A stretch of DNA of 63,025 nt, filler included, from Octopus bimaculoides (taxonomy: Eukaryota): NCBI RefSeq assembly GCF_001194135.2. It is 6 parts of 5 records of this genome, joined end to end, with 100 filler letters (N's around TTAATTAATTAA, not from the genome) between each part and the next. Parts side by side here need not be neighbours in the genome. Positions count along the whole stretch, not along the records: positions 1 to 20,017 come from NC_068988.1; 5 more parts are not named here. One strand, given 5' to 3'. The position numbers were made by a program, and so were the translations under genes. How positions within the stretch are numbered: position 1 is the first letter of the stretch; every line of letters starts with the position of its first letter. Positions 171 to 20,017 of the stretch are shown one piece after another. The notes below the pieces were generated by a model, which saw only the letters and a program-made list of their open reading frames with translations, was not told the origin of the DNA and made no database searches.

Positions 171-1887
171 GTGTATAATACACTACACACATAAAACACA
201 ATTTTATTTCAAAAATAACTCGGGTAATTGTAGAGTGTTCCAATTCACATATTCATTTATTTAGTTGCTATATGAATTATTATGAACAAGAAAGCCGGTA
301 TTCATGATCGAATATGCCAGTATAACTGAAAACATATCACGAATGAATATAGTATTCCGAAACGTTTTTCGTCTAATGCTTGTTACTCTTTTCTTCTCCA
401 ACGTATTTTATCGGTTATTTCATGTATCATCCTCCGTTGGTTTTTTTTATCAATGTGTTTGATAGTTTTCTTCATCATATATCATACCCAGTATAATCTC
501 TCACAGATTCTTATATTATCTCTTATACAAAACATAAATGTATTTATATCGAGATCAATTTCTCTTATATCATATTGAAGACGATCAACCTTTTATAGGC
601 TCAGTACGTTAATCTGCAATGATTGGTTGTCTTACCTATCATGTGAGTTTCGAACATTGCTTCAGTCCTGTGCTTTGACTGATTGAGTATTGCACAGGAT
701 GTGGATCGAAGACCCAATCACATTCTGTGTAATACATTCTCAAGCAACAAATCTGAAAGCACTCTGGAGCCTACTCGCTTCCTATAAATTGATGTAACAA
801 AATCATCTATGAGAAGGGTGAGCAATTTTCAACGGGGCACATGTAGCCAATGACCGTCCGATCTGTATTATCCAAAAGATGGCTGAACCATATAACCACC
901 AGAAATCGTGATGTTTTTTTTATATTTGGTCCACTGTACTGTTTAACGGAGGAATAAAGTCACGCTGTTATATTTGAAGTTCGTTTCTTGTATTTCTTGT
1001 ATTGTTTCCACGAGTGAACAGGCATCATATATTATGTAATGGTTTGCAAGATTCTGTAGTAAAACCAAAGGAGGCTTTATAGAACGCTGATTAATATTTA
1101 TTGCCAAATGTATATCAGCAGTTACTTCATTCAAATGTAATTACGGAAAGCATTGAAATAAGCTCATAAAAATTGCAAGGTCAGCAAATCCACAGTAATA
1201 ACACGATAATATTTTGTAAAGTACGTCGTAGCCTATTATATTTTCTTCGACAGACTTTCGTATTAATCACTTAATATCTTTAGAAGAATATCATTTAAAT
1301 TGCATTAATTATAGAGGCAATGTTACACATTAAGTTTGATAATGCGCTTAATTCAACGCCTAGTTTACTGTGATTTCTTTAACTTTACGATTCACTCGTG
1401 AAAGAGACAAAAACGCGTAGTCTCTTGATATTATTAAGGAGATAATTAAAACAAGACGAGAAATTGTTTGATGGCGAAGAATATAATATAAGAACAGGTT
1501 TGAGGCAATAAAATGAAATATAACTATACCTCCGAAAGTCAATGCCGCTCACACCTCAGAAAAACAGTTGTGGTCCTGATACCTAGAATGAACACTGTGA
1601 CACGTGTGATTTTTAACATACAGGAGATTGAGTGAGAAGCTTTCATTAAGTTTGGCTATTAAGTAAATACGTTGACATATTGAAAGTTGTTACATAATAT
1701 AACGATGTTAAGTTTATAAACGTGAAATTCCACCGGATCATATTTGTTTCATTTCTTGTTTTTTTTTTTTTTTTGGTTTTGTGTTTTTTTACAATAGTTT
1801 TACAGATGAAATACCACTACGCATATTGTCCGGCGTGCTAACGATTCTGCCGGTTCGTGGGGTTAAAGCTGAGTATATTTTTTAATT

Positions 1888-2255
1888 CTTTTACCTTTTT
1901 CAGTTATTTGACTCCGGCTATGTTGGAGCACCGCCTAAGAGTGTTTTTTTAGTCGACGAAATCGCCCCGGGACTTATTTGTGTAATCCTAGTATTTATTA
2001 CACCGTTCTCTTTAGCTGAACCGCAAGGTTACAGGGACGTAAACGGTTGTCAAGTGATGGGGGGGGGCGTCAAACATAAACACAAAGTCACACACACGCA
2101 TATATATTGGGCTTCTTTCAGTTTCCGTCTTCCAAATCCACTCAGAAAGACTTGGTCGGCCCGAGGCTCCAGTAGTAGACACTAGCTACGCAGTGGGACT
2201 GAACCCATAACGATGAGGTTGGGAATCAAGCTTTTTATCACACATCCATGCCTGT
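1888..2255 (-). mobile_element. SINE family A copy (diverged)
   Basis: Reverse complement matches head (GGGTTCAGTCCCACTGCGT), GGAAACTGAAAGAAGCCC and tail (GGCGGTGCTCCAACAT..) seen in other copies such as 13418-13804. Confidence 0.85.
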
Positions 2256-2522
2256 ACCTACAGCCTTGACCAAAACTATTAGGTTACACGAATATTTTGG
2301 GGTTCACCTATCTCAATGTTAATGAACCTCGTGCACATGATAGAGTATGGTATATTTCACAATATACATTTAATGTCTGGTTGATCCTTCTTTAACATCA
2401 ATTACCGCTTTTACATTATACTGTACATATGTAATCAATTATGAGTAAGACCAATGTCCAAAATTAACTTATGGTTCCTTGATTATTTCAGAGTTTTATG
2501 CTAAAATACCTTGTAGATACAG

Positions 2523-2990
2523 TTGATAAGCAGCAAAATGCTTAAAACAAGGGAGTTGAGTGAGTGTGATCGAGGTAAACTCGTAGCTCATCATAAAGGT
2601 GGAACGTCACACAGGCAATCTGCGCAGATGAAATGTACTCGATGTGCGGCGCAAACCACTCTCAAGCGCATCAGAGAGGCAAAAGATGTGAAGACAATAC
2701 AAAGAACAGGTATAAAAAAGGCTACATCACCTCGTGATGACAGATCCATAAACTGCCAGTCGCTCAGAATCAGGACAAAAGTATTGTCGGCGCTTTGTGC
2801 GAATTTCAACGAGGCAAGTACTTCACAAATATCAACCAGAACTTTTGACTACGGTGTCAAAGGCTTTAAAGCCATTGGTTTCTGAAGCGAATGTGGAAAA
2901 ACGCCTTCAGTGGGCCAAAAACCACTCTAATTGGACCAGTGACAATGGTCGAAAGTCATATGGGCTGATGAAAGTATCTATGAGGTAAGA
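2523..2990 (+). pseudogene. Tc1-family transposase relic (HTH region to first catalytic D), frameshifted and truncated
   Basis: RELSECDRGKLVAHHKGG..RTGIKKATSPRDDR; KPLVSEANVEKRLQWAKNHSNW; and in a shifted frame WSKVIWADES (2946-2975), typical of Tc1 transposases. No TIR pair identified. Confidence 0.85.
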
Positions 2991-4870: not shown

Positions 4871-5200
4871 ATCTAGACGATCGTGCTAATGAATATAACA
4901 CAATATAAGTGCTGCCGATGGCATTCATTCGAGACGTTGGTTAATATGAAACTTAGTTTTTGATCTAGACATGAGAGATGTTTTGCTGCTAGTATAAATG
5001 CATATGATACCCAGTTTCATTATTAAATAACTGTCTAATAGTACTTCTCAACTGGTATTTTAATGGTGACAACTGTGGTAAAAAAGCACAAGCTACACTC
5101 TCAAAGAAGTACCAATAACGAACCACAAAGAGATCGGGAAAAATAATTTACTTACATTATTTACATTTGACGGATATTTGTCCTCATCTTGTTTGTTGTT

Positions 5201-5247
5201 AACACAACTTTTCGACTGATATACCCTCTAGCCTTCATCAAGTGTCT
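5201..5247 (-). ncRNA. Degenerate hammerhead ribozyme motif (family D)
   Basis: AGACAC UUGAUGA A GGCUA..CAGUC GAAAA GUU GUGUU; core substitutions. Confidence 0.6.
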
Positions 5248-5304
5248 TTGGAAAATTTCGAACCTGGGTTCTCATTCCTAAGGTACTTTTCGATGTTGTT
5301 GTTG

Positions 5305-5346
<42 letters not shown>

Positions 5347-5395
5347 ACATCGAAAAATACCTTAGAAACGAGAACCCAGGTTAGAAATTTCCCCA

Positions 5396-5442
5396 ATACA
5401 CCTGATGAAGGCTGGACGGTATATCGGCCGAAACCCTGTGTT
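5396..5442 (+). ncRNA. Hammerhead ribozyme motif (family D), cleavage triplet mutated
   Basis: AUACAC CUGAUGA A GGCUG gacgguauau CGGCC GAAAC CCU GUGUU. Confidence 0.7.
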
Positions 5443-7506
5443 AACAACAAACAAGATGAGGACTAATATCCGTCAAATGTAAATAATGTAAATAATGTAC
5501 ATAATTCATCATCTCTTAAATATAGACCAGTAGTTTACTTGTAGAAACTTCACATATTGGTTAAATATTGCTCGAAGTCGTTTGACTAATGTTCCTTCAA
5601 CAGAGCATCTAGAACAGGATCTACGTTTTATTACCAACACGATCGTCCCTGGTTATAGTGCAAAATTCATGATAAAGTTAACGCTTTACTGATTATTACG
5701 TATTTAGAAATTTGCTCTGAGTTGTTTATCGAGTACTTCTGCACAAAGACGCAATCTGTTATCTTAGATTTAAATTCCGACTGATATTTATTTCGAAAAT
5801 AGAATTATGTATTTCTAAAATGTATTTTCCCTCTGCATATTGAAGAAATATATTTATCATTATAAACAATGTTTCTTTTACGATGGATTTTGCTAAAGTT
5901 TGAGTGACAATACTTTAGCCTTCATATCACTAATAACCACTCTTTTTTGGACACATGGGTAAAATTTATATCTGTGAAAAAAAAAAATCTCTAGTAATTT
6001 TATATTCATTTCTCTACTTAAAAGAGTATGCATTTATTAATCCTGTAAAACTGTGGCCATTAAATGCTAATATGGTATTTGCATTTACCAAAATCTAAAC
6101 ACCATATAACGTTAAGAATATGAAATATCCTCATGCCTAATTTATTTCCTGACAATTACCGGTGTTCAGAAGAATTTTCCTAAACAGTTTCCGTAAAACC
6201 AAATGAATTGCACCACTTAGAATCATAGTAACGCATCTGGTGTAACGCAAGTGATATATAAATATAACAGGCATTTTATTAAACCTTATCGAGGCTGAGA
6301 ATCAATCATGTCATTTCATTGCATTTGATCTTATGGGTTTGAATATTAATGTCTATGTATATAAGGCACTTACAATGAAACCTACAAAATACTGATGTAT
6401 GTTAAACTCCTTTTGGAACAAAACACAAGAATTTCTACCAAATTGAAATGGTATAATACTTTATCCGAATAACATGTCACGTTCGACAACAAAAAAAAAA
6501 AACTTCGTGATCTATCGCTTTAATCTAGTTTAGCTAGGTAAAGATTCTTATATTGAATTTTTTCTACCTTGTGTAAAAGTAGTCCATATAATAAATATTA
6601 AAGCTTTGATGACAACGTAGGTTTTGGAATAATTAAGTATTTAGTGTCATATATAAAGAGGTTAGTGCCAATTCAAAAAAAAATTATGTTACATTTAACA
6701 GCTTGAAATTTAATATTTTAGCAATTTTATGATAGTTGATTATAATGAGATACTGACAGAATTGCAATACACTAAATCTTACAATCTATATGATTATAAC
6801 ATAGTGAACTCAATATAATATAAATTATCTGGAGAATTCCACAAAAATCTATCGTATATTTTTGGTTGCAAACACAAATAATAATACGTACATCAAATAC
6901 GCGTAACTTGTTCAAAGTTTAATAGAAAAAGAATATCGATAACCGAAAATAAATGAGGACGGGAAATGGGTGTAGTCATTTTGAAAATACCTGAAAGAAT
7001 TATGTTTATCTTATCACTCTAGAGGTAAGAATATATTTGACAGCTAGATACAAACAGCTGCAAAACTATACTTCAATGCACTAAGTTCTTTTTTATTTGT
7101 CATTTGAAGAAATTTTATGATGTGAAAGAAATCTATATTGAAATATATTACAGAGATGTGAATGTAGTTTCCTATCTTCTGGCAAAGTTCCTATTTTATA
7201 TGCATTCAAACATCCGGTGCAGATAATTCTAATGCTGCAGTAATCCATACAAGTTGGATGAATAGAATATGTCACACTTATGCTATACAAAAAAATTATA
7301 CCGACGGCAGATATATGATATATGGCAAATTTTCTATGATGTACGCATTCATGCATCCGGTTGAGATAAGCAAAACGTTGGAAGAGTACATAGTTTTATT
7401 AATCGATTATGTCACCCCCGTTGGCTATAAAGCAATAAGAAAACGATGAAAAATTATATATGATATATACGTGTGCGCCTGAATGATAGCATATACAAGT
7501 GTAGAG

Positions 7507-12345: not shown

Positions 12346-12901
12346 CGAGTAGTAGCAACATGCGTAATAATAAGGAAGAAAATTATTAACGCTAACAGCG
12401 ACTGTACTATCAAAAATGTTAAAAGACATAATTTCAGAAATAGATATACCTACGTACTTCACTCATTCTTTTTACACTCTAGAAAGATTTCCGGATTTTT
12501 GTTTGATTATTTCGTTGTGGATCATGCTTCATTTTTGACCTCTTAATCCCTATTCTCAATTCGGTGCATATTTACGAAAAGGCTATGATGTTCATTCAAA
12601 ATCAGCATTGACAGATGTTGATGTTGTTTGCAAATAGACGCAGCGAAAGAGAAAAATAAATAAGTGAGATATAAAAAGACAAAAACAAAAACGCTACGCC
12701 GGGAAATACTTCTAGATAACATAACACGCGCGGGCACACATACATACGCACACGCAGACGTACATATACACACGCACATATCTTCACACGTATATATGTC
12801 TATTAGAATCGAATGTAACACATGTCTTCTGTAGTATCCTCTACTATCAATTTTGCTCAGATGATTTCCTTAGACCATTTATGCGTAACATGGGAAAATT
12901 A

Positions 12902-13067
12902 TACAGTTCTATATTTAAGAGATGAAGAATTATGTACACTATTTACATTATTTACATTTGACGGATATTTGTCCTCATCTTGTTTGTTGTTAACACGTTT
13001 CGGCTGATATACCCTCCAGCCTCCATAAGGTGTCTTCGGGGAAATTTCGAACATGGATTCTCATTCC
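12902..13067 (-). mobile_element. Family D inverted tail arm
   Basis: Reverse complement of 13245-13372 plus further 3' sequence; degenerate hammerhead at 12992-13035. Confidence 0.9.
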
Positions 13068-13161
13068 AGTCATATGGCGTAGTGGTTAAGAGCGCGGGCT
13101 ACTAACCCCAAGATTCCGAGTTCGATTCCAGGCAGTGACCGGAATAATAATAATAATAATA

Positions 13162-13200
<39 letters not shown>

Positions 13201-13202
13201 AG

Positions 13203-13235
<33 letters not shown>

Positions 13236-13372
13236 TCGAAATATAGGAATGAGAACCCATGTTCGAAATTTCCCCAAGACACATGATGAAGGCTGGAGAG
13301 TATATCAGCCGAAACATTGTGTTAACCACAAACAAGATGAGGACAAATATCCGTCAAATGTAAATAATGTAA
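13068..13372 (+). mobile_element. Family D element: tRNA-derived head + (AAT)n + hammerhead-bearing tail
   Basis: A-box TGGCGTAGTGG (13075-13085), B-box GAGTTCGATTCC (13118-13129), AAT/ATT linker, hammerhead fold 13277-13323. Confidence 0.88.
13277..13323 (+). ncRNA. Hammerhead ribozyme motif (family D), C3 and triplet substitutions
   Basis: AGACAC AUGAUGA A GGCUG gagaguauau CAGCC GAAAC AUU GUGUU. Confidence 0.7.
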
Positions 13373-13417
13373 AGAATGGGAGAATGAAATACTAATTATC
13401 ATATGGTGTAGAGTTTT

Positions 13418-13804
13418 ATAGGAGTGGTTTGTGGCACGTAGCTTGCTTACCAACCACATGGTTGCGGGTTCAGTCCCACTGCGTGACACCTTGGCCAAGT
13501 GTCTTCTACTATAGCCTCGGGTCCACCAAAGCCTTGTGAGTGGATTTGGTAGATGAAAGCCGAAACAAGCCCGTCGTATATTTATGTATATAGGTATCTG
13601 TATGTGTGTCTGTGTTCATCCCCCCAACATCGCTTGACAACTGATCTTCGTGTGTTTACGTCCTCGTAACATAGCGGTTCGGCAAAATTGCCTGATAGAA
13701 TAAGTACTAGGCTTACAAAGAATAAGTCCTAGGGTCGATTTGTTCGACTAAAAATACGGTGCTCCGGCATGACCGCAGTCAAATGACTGAAACAAATAAA
13801 AGAA
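13418..13804 (+). mobile_element. SINE family A full-length copy
   Basis: tRNA-like head with GGGTTCAGTCCC B-box, internal TA/TG tract, tail ending TGACTGAAACAAATAAAAGAA. Confidence 0.92.
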
Positions 13805-13810
13805 TGTGTG

Positions 13811-13882
<72 letters not shown>

Positions 13883-15244
13883 CGTCATCTTATCTGCAAA
13901 AGAGATTTTTCAGGAATATACCCCATTCTTTCTCACTGCTACATATGATAGCTCTTTACACATTAATTCTTTCATTATGTTTCTGTTCTTATTTAATATA
14001 ATTCTTATATCTAGAAATTATCTGCAACTTATTTTGTTCATTCTTATATTTTATTTCAGTTTATGTACAGTTAAAAACTTATCTATTAAAATATTGTTTC
14101 AAAAATTGATTTTTGACTAAATTAGTATTAAATATGGAATCTAAAATAGAAAATAGAAATATTGACTTCAATATGTTGTATTTCTGTCTTGGATCTTATT
14201 TTATAAATTACTCCAAAACAGAAATATACTAAATATACAACTGTCAATACTTAGCTTGTTACCGCCCCTGTATGTGTCACTATTTCTGTGTAAGTATATA
14301 TATATATATATATATATATAAATATATATATNNNNNNNNNNNNNNNNNNNNNNNNNNNNNNNNNNNNNNNNNNNNNNNNNNNNNNNNNNNNNNNNNNNNN
14401 NNNNNNNNNNNNNNNNNNNNNNNNNNNNNNNNNNNNNNNNNNNNNNNNNNNNNNNNNNNNNNNNNNNNNNNNNNNNNNNNNNNNNNNNNNNNNNNNNNNN
14501 NNNNNNNNNNNNNNNNNNNNNNNNNNNNNNNNNNNNNNNNNNNNNNNNNNNNNNNNNNNNNNNNNNNNNNNNNNNNNNNNNNNNNNNNNNNNNNNNNNNN
14601 NNNNNNNNNNNNNNNNNNNNNNNNNNNNNNNNNNNNNNNNNNNNNNNNNNNNNNNNNNNNNNNNNNNNNNNNNNNNNNNNNNNNNNNNNNNNNNNNNNNN
14701 NNNNNNNNNNNNNNNNNNNNNNNNNNNNNNNNNNNNNNNNNNNNNNNNNNNNNNNNNNNNNNNNNNNNNNNNNNNNNNNNNNNNNNNNNNNNNNNNNNNN
14801 NNNNNNNNNNNNNNNNNNNNNNNNNNNNNNNNNNNNNNNNNNNNNNNNNNNNNNNNNNNNNNNNNNNNNNNNNNNNNNNNNNNNNNNNNNNNNNNNNNNN
14901 NNNNNNNNNNNNNNNNNNNNNNNNNNNNNNNNNNNNNNNNNNNNNNNNNNNNNNNNNNNNNNNNNNNNNNNNNNNNNNNNNNNNNNNNNNNNNNNNNNNN
15001 NNNNNNNNNNNNNNNNNNNNNNNNNNNNNNNNNNNNNNNNNNNNNNNNNNNNNNNNNNNNNNNNNNNNNNNNNNNNNNNNNNNNNNNNNNNNNNNNNNNN
15101 NNNNNNNNNNNNNNNNNNNNNNNNNNNNNNNNNNNNNNNNNNNNNNNNNNNNNNNNNNNNNATATATATATATATATATATATACGTATGCATGTATGTA
15201 TGCATGGTTTATGTATGCATGCGCACACGTGTATTTGTAGGTCT

Positions 15245-17908: not shown

Positions 17909-19255
17909 AATATTCACTTGACCCTGGAATATAATGCAGATAAATCTTGAATATCGTAGTTTGTAGATATTTACACCTTAAGATGTACAGCTTCTAGCTA
18001 TTTGTTTCATGAATATATTTTATGTATTGGTCTAAACATTCTATTTCAATTCTTCTATGTATCACAGTCATGATTTTCTGTTTACATAAGAATCTTAACT
18101 TGTACGTGTTTATTAAATCTGATACGTCTCAGATAACAACATTAATCTAGAATATATACTCGTGGTATCGTTAATGAAGAAGATATTATCTTAAAGAACC
18201 AAATACAAATCTGGTTTAATTTATAAAAAAAAATATATCCGTTTATCTTCATTAGCGTTGGAAAAGGTTATCATAATATTTATAAAACACTGAAATCAAC
18301 ATTGTACGTCTTCCTGTAACCACTCCTTTAGCGAATCTATAGACTGAATGGTGTAGATAGATTTATGAATGGATATTTGTATATATGAGCAAGTAATAAC
18401 ATTAATACATATGTACATCTGTGTACGCCTGTGAGTGTGCAACTACGGAGAGATAAACATACCAGCTACTTGCAGTATGTATGTGCGTGTATGTACGTGT
18501 ATTAAGTTTTATACGGTACACGTCTTCAGTGACATTGAAATTTTGTCTTGCTCGCCTTCATTAAGCTCTGCCAAACTTTGGTTGTTTTGATTTCATAAAA
18601 TCGTTACGAGATTTGCTTTTTGCAGTGTAGGTGTGCCTATATGAATGGCAATTATGGAAAGAGGGGAGGCAGTAATATACGTTTCTCTCTATACGTAAAA
18701 TGTTTTGACTTATTTCATAAAAATGTACGTTATCTTAGTTCATAATTTTACAATCTATCTTGCAATATGATTAGTTTTCGATATGAGCTCTCTCATAATT
18801 AAAAAAAAACCTCTTTAAATGGAAGAATCACAGACATTCGAACAGCTAGTATCAGAAAGCGAAATCAACGGCTAAATACATGCATACATAGATATACACA
18901 TACATATATACACATACATTTACATACACCCGGAACAGAGACAACTCATGAAGGGAAACATTCTTTATGTTGCATGTCTCGTTTCTCTGTTTGCTTTTTT
19001 CGTTGTTCGAAAAAGAGTTTGTTTTCTGTTTTCGTATTTATGTTTTCATTTCTCATTGTGTTTAGCGTTATTTTATTTATTTATTTATTATTATTTTTTT
19101 TTGTGATGTCCTGTACCTTTATGTGCATGTATGTATATATATATATATGTATATATATATATCTGAAGGTATATACATATATGTATAGATACATGCATAT
19201 ATTATTTATATTATTGTATATATATATATATATATATATAAGTATACATATATGT

Positions 19256-20017
19256 ATGGGGACGAGGTTTGCTCCCGTTTATGCGAATTCGGTGATGGGT
19301 TACTTGGAACAAAAACTCTACCAGGAAATAGAGGAGATATATAACACCGAATTTAGGAACTTTATAGAAAAAGCATGGAAGAGATACCTGAACGATTGCT
19401 TCATAATATGGACCAAACCTCAAAGCATTGTGGAAGAATTTAACACCCTACTGAACAACCTACACCCATCCATCCAATTTACAAAGGAGATGAACATTAG
19501 CAAATTACCATTTCTAGGTATAATGGTAATTAAAAAGAACACCGCCATTACCACATATATATATTACAAACACACAGACACACACCAATACTTGAACTTT
19601 AAATCGTGCCATCCACCCCATACAAAACGCAACATACCATACTGCCTAGCCAGGAAAATATGTACTATTGTAGAGGATATAGAGACCAGAAATCAGCGTT
19701 TGATGGAACTGAAAGAATTTCTGCTGAAGCAAAAGTACCCATCACGACTCATAGAAAATGGTATTCAGCGGGCTCCGAATATACCCATACAACAACTGAG
19801 GACACCGCAAAGAAAAGACAAACAGGAAAAGATCATTCCATTTATAGTGACACAAAATCCATGCCACCAGAACATCTTTAATATCGCCAACGCGAATTTA
19901 CCGATCCTTGCACAAAGTAAGGAATTGAGAAATATCATTACAGATCAAAATATAACTCTCAGTAAGAGACAACCTAAAAACTTGAAAAAGCTATTAACAA
20001 AGGCAAGGTTTGACCTC
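19256..20017 (+). pseudogene. Penelope-like element reverse transcriptase C-terminal half and thumb; stop-free frame but catalytic motif YLND
   Basis: MGTRFAPVYANSVMGYLE..WKRYLNDCFIIW..LNNLHPSIQFT..LPFLG..YYKHTDTHQYLNFKSCHPPHTKRNIPYCLARKICTIV..QKYP: hallmark PLE RT motifs; bounded by a TA microsatellite and a gap. Confidence 0.93.

Follow-up and report, generated by a model that had tools for sequence, protein, structure and literature searches.

Two inverted composites in an octopus window

The window analysed here is a stretch of 63,025 nucleotides from Octopus bimaculoides, and its first piece (positions 1-20017, from NC_068988.1), an AT-rich segment with 34% G+C and many repeats, was examined. 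This piece contains two related repeat structures, which most likely go back to a short interspersed nuclear element (SINE) moved by the machinery of Penelope-like elements (PLEs). An earlier note on this DNA had drawn attention to positions 13068-13372 as a SINE with a tRNA-derived RNA polymerase III (Pol III) head, an (AAT)n linker and a tail carrying a hammerhead ribozyme. The inverted-repeat arms were located by an inverted-repeat search and self-BLAST of the piece, and the noted range proved to be about the right two-thirds of a larger structure, composite B, which spans 476 bp (12900-13375) and holds a tRNA-like head and a microsatellite between its inverted arms (12937-13067 and 13246-13378). 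In the other structure, composite A (5154-5530), the arms (5148-5297 and 5346-5495) join across 48 nt of (GTT)4(ATT)12 and there is no head. The body repeated in these arms, which is ~190 nt long and was oriented by the sense of its hammerhead, is called U below; the parts of both composites are collected in Table 1.

The arms of the two composites are 125-150 nt long and point outward, with their 5′-ends facing each other. Those of composite B are 94.6% identical over their common core (5.4% divergence), those of composite A are 88.7% identical (11.3% divergence), and the identity between A and B amounts to 90-92% (divergence of 8-9.6%); these values fit the simultaneous copying of both arms from one master at each insertion. 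Only one arm of each composite carries a 3′-extension (39 nt in A and 43 nt in B), and the extended arm is the more 5′-truncated one. Since the extension has the same sequence in A and B, it is templated. Each composite is bracketed by a 9/10 direct repeat near its ends, and when the best local match between the flanks was compared with that of random flank pairs drawn from the window, p = 0.026 was obtained for both. Self-BLAST recovered the four tail copies that had been noticed in this piece, but they are not independent of each other, being the arms of the two inverted composites, and the direct repeats around both composites indicate two insertion events rather than four.

Table 1. Parts of composites A and B in the window, with strand and basis
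Feature	Position	Strand	Basis
Candidate left target-site duplication of A, TAATTTACTT	5144-5153	.	9/10 match to 5531-5540, p = 0.026
Fuller copy of A, truncated within the linker: U short form 5154-5297 and minus-strand (AAC)4(AAT)12 5298-5345, no head	5154-5345	-	
Hammerhead remnant, left arm of A: C3→U, stem II G→A, GAAAAGUU (C15.2→A)	5201-5247	-	
Inverted partner copy of A, truncated at U start	5346-5530	+	arm alignment
Hammerhead remnant, right arm of A: CUGAUGA and GAAAC intact, U.G wobble keeps stem II; GAAAC-CCU-G → G at cleavage position	5396-5442	+	
39-nt 3′-extension of the partner copy of A	5492-5530	+	arm alignment
Candidate right target-site duplication of A, TAGTTTACTT	5531-5540	.	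flank comparison
Candidate left target-site duplication of B, ATGGGAAAAT	12890-12899	.	9/10 match to 13376-13385, p = 0.026
Inverted 5′-truncated U copy of B, begins at U ~20 (GGAATGAG)	12900-13067	-	inverted repeats, arm alignment
43-nt 3′-extension of the left arm of B, not on the right arm	12900-12942	-	arm alignment
Hammerhead remnant, left arm of B: CUUAUGG core (G5→U, A9→G), 3-nt deletion GAAAC-G--GUGUU	12992-13035	-	fails descriptor
Degenerate tRNA-like head, Pol III type-2 promoter	13069-13140	+	sequence; relaxed ARAGORN; 3′ half recurs in L005
Linker microsatellite (AAT)7 (ATT)13 ATAAG (ATA)10	13141-13233	+	sequence
U body of the full-length copy of B, short form without 3′-extension	13234-13375	+	arm alignment
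Hammerhead remnant, right arm of B: C3→A and GAAACAUU (16.2 G→A)	13277-13323	+	fails descriptor
Candidate right target-site duplication of B, ATGGGAGAAT	13376-13385	.	flank comparison

Related copies at other loci

Relatives were sought by comparing translated U, one frame of which is open for ~60 codons, with protein collections. The word-based search returned three open reading frames (ORFs), two from O. bimaculoides and one from a Logan contig, and the profile search with the U translation over 1.84 billion representatives gave 79 ORFs at E ≤ 0.001, nearly all of which stem from U or related repeats. The DNA behind the matched ORFs yielded six further loci, namely L003, L005, L006/L007 and L009 from octopod read assemblies (run series SRR118693xx), and L004 and L008 from the ENA assembly ERZ21867824, which has no other repeats in common with octopus. 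No match came from scans for exact patterns in metagenome contigs (two patterns) or in viral contigs, and no copy of U or the head was present in two O. sinensis loci (37 kb) reached through a PLE ORF. The frame used for the search is open in most U copies (5344-5463, 13234-13371 and, on the minus strand, 12902-13054 in the window) and has no Pfam match. One of the matched ORFs supplies the N-terminus of a dystrobrevin-beta isoform model in O. bimaculoides (P0090), where the U stretch is probably an exonized or mis-annotated repeat. The conjecture that 'NGIRT' in related ORFs represents a reverse-complement B box was discarded on reading the DNA, and the one that P0099 carries a head proved wrong as well.

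At L005, an inverted U arm is followed by the 3′ half of the head with its B box, an AAT-type linker and U, and the head half is identical to the window head (~13108-13134) at 22 of 27 positions. The flanks of L005 are unrelated to the window, thus this locus is a second, independent (non-orthologous) instance of head, linker and U with an inverted partner upstream. At L003, a single U arm follows (AAT)n at the contig edge, L006/L007 contains an inverted pair, both arms of which are cut near position 25-30 of U, without a head, and L009 is a single uninverted U copy with GAAACGTT intact. AAT-type repeats stand before U in composite A as well as in L003 and L005, and no tandem U was seen in six octopod loci. 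The 5′-ends form a truncation series from the full head (B) through mid-head (L005) to the linker (A). The end point of the inverted arm in U (...CTCATTC) is shared by B (window 13060-13068) and the non-orthologous L005 (~680-690), which suggests a preferred template-switch point and not random truncation.

The family represented by L004 (2870-3345) and L008 (9717-10381) consists of a tRNA-like head with the A box TGGCGTAACGG and the B box GGTTCAATTCT, a leader of ~110 nt and one to three tandem 129-nt units, each with an intact CAC CUGAAGA A GGCCGG..UCGGCC GAAAC GUU GUG. The units match the hammerhead module of U with 76-84% identity over 68-88 nt (E down to 1e-15). At L008, the 5′-end of a full-length headed copy adjoins an inverted, 5′-truncated tandem array that extends ~36 nt further at its 3′-end, and the resulting 665-bp composite lies between 11/12 repeats (CTTAAAAACTGT/CTTAAAAATTGT) that are flush with both ends; this is the layout of composite B in a younger state. 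A further inverted motif is located at 3674-3714 of L004. Both L005, by its order of parts, and the L004/L008 family, by its combination of a tRNA-like head and hammerhead units, support the claim of the earlier note that head and tail are one unit. Head and body are joined in independent copies (B and L005), and 5′ truncation as well as target duplications (9/10 in A, 9/10 in B and 11/12 in L008) are seen, as is characteristic of SINE2 elements.

Hammerhead motif, tRNA-like head and neighbouring repeats

None of the four hammerhead copies in the window is intact and none passes the descriptor of minimal hammerhead ribozymes (min-HHRs). Their core and stem defects differ in all four, as had been remarked before. 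The MAFFT majority consensus of five arms reads GACAC CUGAUGA A GGCUGG-8 nt-UCAGCC GAAAC nUU GUGUU, and in the consensus of 14 sequences the open position n is G (GAAAC-GUU-GUGUU), by which the hammerhead reconstructed in the earlier note was reproduced. The majority consensus passes the descriptor. The descriptor had no match in random Markov-1 sequence (20 Mb) of the window's composition, thus the chance of finding one in a 190-nt consensus is below ~1e-4. The core C3-U-G-A-N-G8-A9...G12-A-A14 with H (not G) at the cleavage position 17 is present in the consensus of both 5 and 14 copies and in the L004/L008 units, not in the single window copies. Helix II (A-GGCUGG...UCAGCC) was found in the consensus and in three of the four window copies, and the G10.1-C11.1 pair in 9/14 sequences. 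Both the consensus and the four window copies have stems I and II in their minimum-free-energy folds, with unremarkable z-scores. In the alignment of the 14 sequences, 77% of the cells are paired as against 18-50% in slid registers, and the pair 10.4-11.4 (UA in seven, UG in four, CG in three, unpaired in none) is the only one that varies on both sides.

The earlier note had also described a palindromic stem III, AACGUU. This is intact in L009, in the left arm of L006 (both with GAAACGUU) and in L004/L008, but the window copies lack it, apart from the left arm of B, which alone has kept the C-G of ACGU (as ACG), alongside a deletion. Of the 14 aligned sequences, eight have the ACGU, among them every L004/L008 unit as well as L009 and the left arm of L006, and in the octopod copies it is the most variable column. 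CpG decay was rejected as the cause of the variable 15.2/16.2 site, since the observed/expected ratio of CpG in the window is 0.92 and the other CpGs of U are mostly intact by alignment reading. The hammerheads of PLEs are marked by an extra nucleotide between A9 and G10.1 and by a G10.1-C11.1 pair (Cervera & de la Pena, 2014, PMC4209133). The octopod consensus has both of these marks, its helix I is likewise short, and a palindrome apparently stands in the place of helix III, as listed for PLE hammerheads in the same paper; the descent of the tail from a PLE-type minimal type I hammerhead is supported. With all hammerheads broken and arms diverged by 5-11%, the window copies are likely dead and their activity is unlikely. 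A different minimal hammerhead was observed on the plus strand of the O. sinensis locus L002 (10708-10762; CTACG CUGAUGA A GCUA..UAGC U GAAA CUGCAGU A CGUAG), in which helix I has 5 bp and the palindromic ACUGCAGU replaces helix III.

The Pol III head that had been proposed is present at 13069-13140; its A box (TGGCGTAGTGG, 13075-13085) is perfect, its B box (GAGTTCGATTCC, 13118-13129) nearly so, and the two lie at a spacing of 32 nt. ARAGORN missed it at default settings and produced a poor cloverleaf at 90% of the threshold (-ps90), and the Rfam tRNA model did not match it even in a 541-nt search. The head is thus degenerate, with A and B boxes at the tRNA-like spacing that is expected of SINE2 elements. 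By self-BLAST it is single in the window piece, composite A having none. Its decay far exceeds the 3-6% decay per arm, indicating that it was already a SINE head at insertion and not a freshly captured tRNA. The linker was found where (AAT)n had been placed, but its composition is the compound one given in Table 1; it changes strand sense twice, from (AAT)7 to (ATT)13 to (ATA)10, and includes a perfect 31-nt microsatellite palindrome, the linker of L005 being of a single orientation.

Another tRNA-derived SINE, which is abundant in octopus, has copies at 13404-13805 (plus strand) and 1874-2262 (minus strand) of the window and is tRNA-like only at relaxed ARAGORN settings. The copy at 13404 begins ~20 nt past the right flanking repeat of composite B. 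The same SINE is present in L001, L002, L005 and L006, and a truncated copy of it adjoins the L005 element in the same orientation. A 120-aa ORF at 2523-2885 (plus strand) gave a weak match to the helix-turn-helix of Sleeping Beauty transposase (E = 0.0036, below the Pfam cut-off) and is probably a Tc1/mariner remnant. An assembly gap, an 830-base N run between (TA)n flanks, occupies 14332-15161, and the ORFs called across it are artefacts.

Origin and mobilization of the element

PLE insertions have as hallmarks an inverted 5′-truncated copy next to the 5′-end, a tail of 30-40 bp at one end only, and a link to microsatellites (Craig, Yushenova, Rodriguez & Arkhipova, 2021, PMC8557442), and PLE remnants of schistosomes contain dual min-HHRs on opposite strands, 100-700 bp apart (PMC4209133). 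An inverted 5′-truncated copy abuts the 5′-end of a fuller copy in A, B, L005, L006/L007 and L008 (L009 is a single copy, and the end of the contig cuts L003), and the one-sided 3′-extension, 39 nt in A, 43 nt in B and ~36 nt in L008, is always on the more truncated copy. The inverted layout, the one-sided extension and the composite-wide direct repeats support the PLE mobilization suggested by the earlier note. The three hallmarks are shared, but the architecture has been described for autonomous elements of 3-4 kb, whereas the octopod element is shorter than 500 bp and non-coding, and its microsatellite is an internal linker, not demonstrably a target. PLEs are present in the O. bimaculoides genome, as follows from a 5′-truncated PLE ORF fragment (thumb/HTH_animal region) at 19256-20017 (plus strand), which runs off the end of the piece. 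The best match of this ORF is an O. sinensis protein (83% identity), and its relatives carry RVT_1 together with a GIY-YIG domain at the C-terminus; the fragment starts directly at a (TA)n run (19130-19257). PLE copies from other assemblies were also seen: L010 (1541-1787) has a tandem pair with the hammerhead-like TTCGC CUGAAGA .. GAAAACGUUA GCGAA between ORFs, and in L011 (3037-5179) two truncated ORFs form an inverted pair, head to head, with a (TA)n run after each of them.

We consider it probable that the element is an old, decayed, tRNA-headed octopod SINE with a PLE-type minimal hammerhead tail, laid down by PLE-type insertion with the PLE machinery acting in trans. Its full-length RNA would comprise the degenerate tRNA-like head with the Pol III A and B boxes, an AAT-type linker and the ~190-nt U body. 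The middle of U would come from a Penelope-type minimal type I hammerhead, and its 3′-end would be the handle for reverse transcription. Transcribed by Pol III from the head, the RNA would be copied and integrated by the reverse transcriptase (RT)/GIY-YIG enzyme of a PLE that recognizes the tail resembling a pseudo-long terminal repeat (pLTR). The hammerhead may be inactive as a monomer, acting only in dimers or tandem master copies, or may be a structural tag. Copies that contain sequence 5′ of the cleavage site must derive from uncleaved RNA, in keeping with the low activity known for min-HHRs as monomers; those published for PLEs show poor cleavage in vitro (PMC4209133). The copies themselves stand as mirror-image pairs, in which the 5′-end of a fuller copy is abutted by an inverted, more 5′-truncated one and the pair lies within one target duplication of ~10-12 bp, and a read-through transcript of such a composite would fold into a long hairpin.

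Several results weigh against this reading. L006 has the extension on both arms and is an exception to the one-sided pattern, head-bearing octopod copies number only two (B and L005), of which L005 is partial, the linker of B contains an (ATT)13 block that this reading does not account for, and the significance of the target duplications, with flanks that are AT-rich, is only moderate. A match to a PLE terminal repeat was missing among the few fragments compared, as U has no similarity to the PLE fragments in the window, L001, L002, L010 and L011, the octopus PLE copies being compared without their 3′-ends. Covariation of the stems, which the earlier note had named as a check, is seen in the pair 10.4-11.4 alone, the whole-structure measures of the 14 sequences not exceeding those of shuffles. 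The comparison with Rfam that it had also advised came out negative, with no hammerhead or tRNA hit at gathering threshold or at E ≤ 10 in the whole piece or in stretches of 200-540 nt. The intact L004 motif was equally missed, thus the Rfam hammerhead models do not cover this class and their negative result carries no weight.

It has been argued for most dispersed and opposite-strand min-HHR pairs that they are truncated PLEs (PMC4209133), and the arms could likewise be 5′-truncated remnants (solo terminal repeats) of an autonomous PLE, the head being a separate SINE in the central microsatellite or an RT template-switch chimera with a small RNA. The absence of a head from composite A and L006, the odd (AAT)7(ATT)13 junction directly after the head of B, and the possibility that (ATT)n attracts a SINE ending in (AAT)n are in line with this origin. 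We regard it as unlikely, however, as the five arms first examined (A, B and L003) end in U or the linker and none reaches PLE coding or other upstream sequence, L005, whose flanks are unrelated, has the head in the same place and orientation, the related L004/L008 family also combines a head with units, and the head is too degenerate for a freshly captured tRNA. An ordinary tRNA-SINE mobilized by a long interspersed nuclear element (LINE), with the hammerhead consensus as a vestige or coincidence and the mirror copies due to nested insertion or local rearrangement, is less probable still. Inverted pairs of one 3′ region occur in five of the six loci with a visible upstream side (A, B, L005, L006 and L008), the duplications enclose the whole pair, LINE twin priming leaves the 3′-end unduplicated, and the hammerhead match is far beyond chance and conserved in a second family. 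These facts outweigh, in our judgement, that a tRNA head, a microsatellite and ~10-bp target duplications are generic SINE traits, that LINE RT fragments are common in these genomes and that the partner element was not identified among the elements compared.

Long inverted arms, AT-rich sequence, a central microsatellite and flanking repeats of ~10 bp would also suit a miniature inverted-repeat or foldback DNA transposon (e.g., a Mutator-like one with long terminal inverted repeats and 9-11 bp duplications) that acquired a SINE in its centre. This is very improbable, because the ends are asymmetric, one arm being 39-43 nt longer where symmetrical termini would be expected, the variation of the inner ends (A, B, L005 and L006) is that of 5′ truncations, in L008 a truncated tandem array is the partner of a full-length unit, L009 is a single uninverted copy, and the hammerhead consensus would be left unexplained.

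Taken as a SINE moved by PLE enzymes, the octopod element can be set beside several known systems. Its motif resembles the min-HHRs of PLE pLTRs (PMC4209133) in the type I topology, the CUGANGA and GAAA cores, the extra A9/G10.1 nucleotide, the G10.1-C11.1 pair and a helix I of 3-5 bp, as well as in the occurrence of opposite-strand pairs 100-700 bp apart and in the high variability between copies. In both, helix III would be no hairpin but only a short ACGU palindrome, which would imply action as a dimer. Unlike the PLE min-HHRs, the octopod motif lies in a ~190-nt body with a tRNA-like head and not beside an RT/GIY-YIG ORF; its helix II has 5-6 bp compared with 7-8 bp in the schistosome families, and all window copies are mutated. 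The schistosome SMalpha/Sjalpha elements (Ferbeyre et al., 1998; Laha et al., 2000; reviewed in PMC6765202), likened here by their description, also combine a Pol III promoter module and a hammerhead in a short non-autonomous retroposon, but SMalpha has a canonical, efficient hammerhead and is typically tandem, whereas the octopod element carries a minimal PLE-type motif, one per unit, in inverted composites of PLE type. Animal non-LTR retrozymes (Cervera & de la Pena, 2020, PMC7229834; Li, Clavereau & Pollet, 2026, 10.64898/2026.07.22.740005) are similar in being short, AT-rich, non-autonomous hammerhead repeats with proposed PLE dependence and duplications of >4 bp. They are tandem 170-400 bp repeats that give rise to circular RNAs, with no Pol III head in their definition, in contrast to the non-tandem U with its tRNA-like head; the L004/L008 family is tandem as retrozymes are, but with 129-nt units. 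Head-to-tail repeats of 170-400 bp with a type I hammerhead in each, by which retrozymes are recognized, were found neither in octopod U nor in L004/L008.

The idea is less novel than the earlier note had assumed, as SINE-like elements with Pol III promoter and hammerhead, non-autonomous hammerhead repeats with proposed PLE dependence and dispersed min-HHRs as PLE remnants have already been described (PMC6765202; PMC7229834; bioRxiv 10.64898/2026.07.22.740005). What appears to be new is that a tRNA-derived head is combined with a minimal hammerhead tail of PLE type, and that an element of such small size bears the full PLE insertion signature, both in cephalopods and in a second genome; in an incomplete library, neither this combination nor anything specific on U-type sequence or PLE-mobilized tRNA SINEs was found. 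As a more tentative proposal, tRNA-headed Pol III SINEs with a PLE-type minimal hammerhead tail may form a distinct, recurrent class of 'SINE partners' of PLEs, built of single units in octopods and of tandem 129-nt units in at least one other animal genome, in which the hammerhead region would be the handle for the PLE RT, and the extension and the inverted partner would read out PLE integration.

For the annotation of the window these elements have little weight, being dead repeats in non-coding DNA. PLE integration, on the other hand, is poorly understood, and the non-autonomous dependants of PLEs have so far been described as tandem 'retrozymes' or were inferred from dispersed hammerheads. 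A non-coding element of less than 500 bp that bears the complete insertion signature of PLEs, with inverted partner, one-sided extension and target duplication, would be a compact natural substrate for dissecting this mechanism, and, if the proposed origin is true, it would provide a read-out of this process on a template small enough for reconstitution. Moreover, the PLE machinery would thereby be linked with a Pol III SINE head outside schistosomes.

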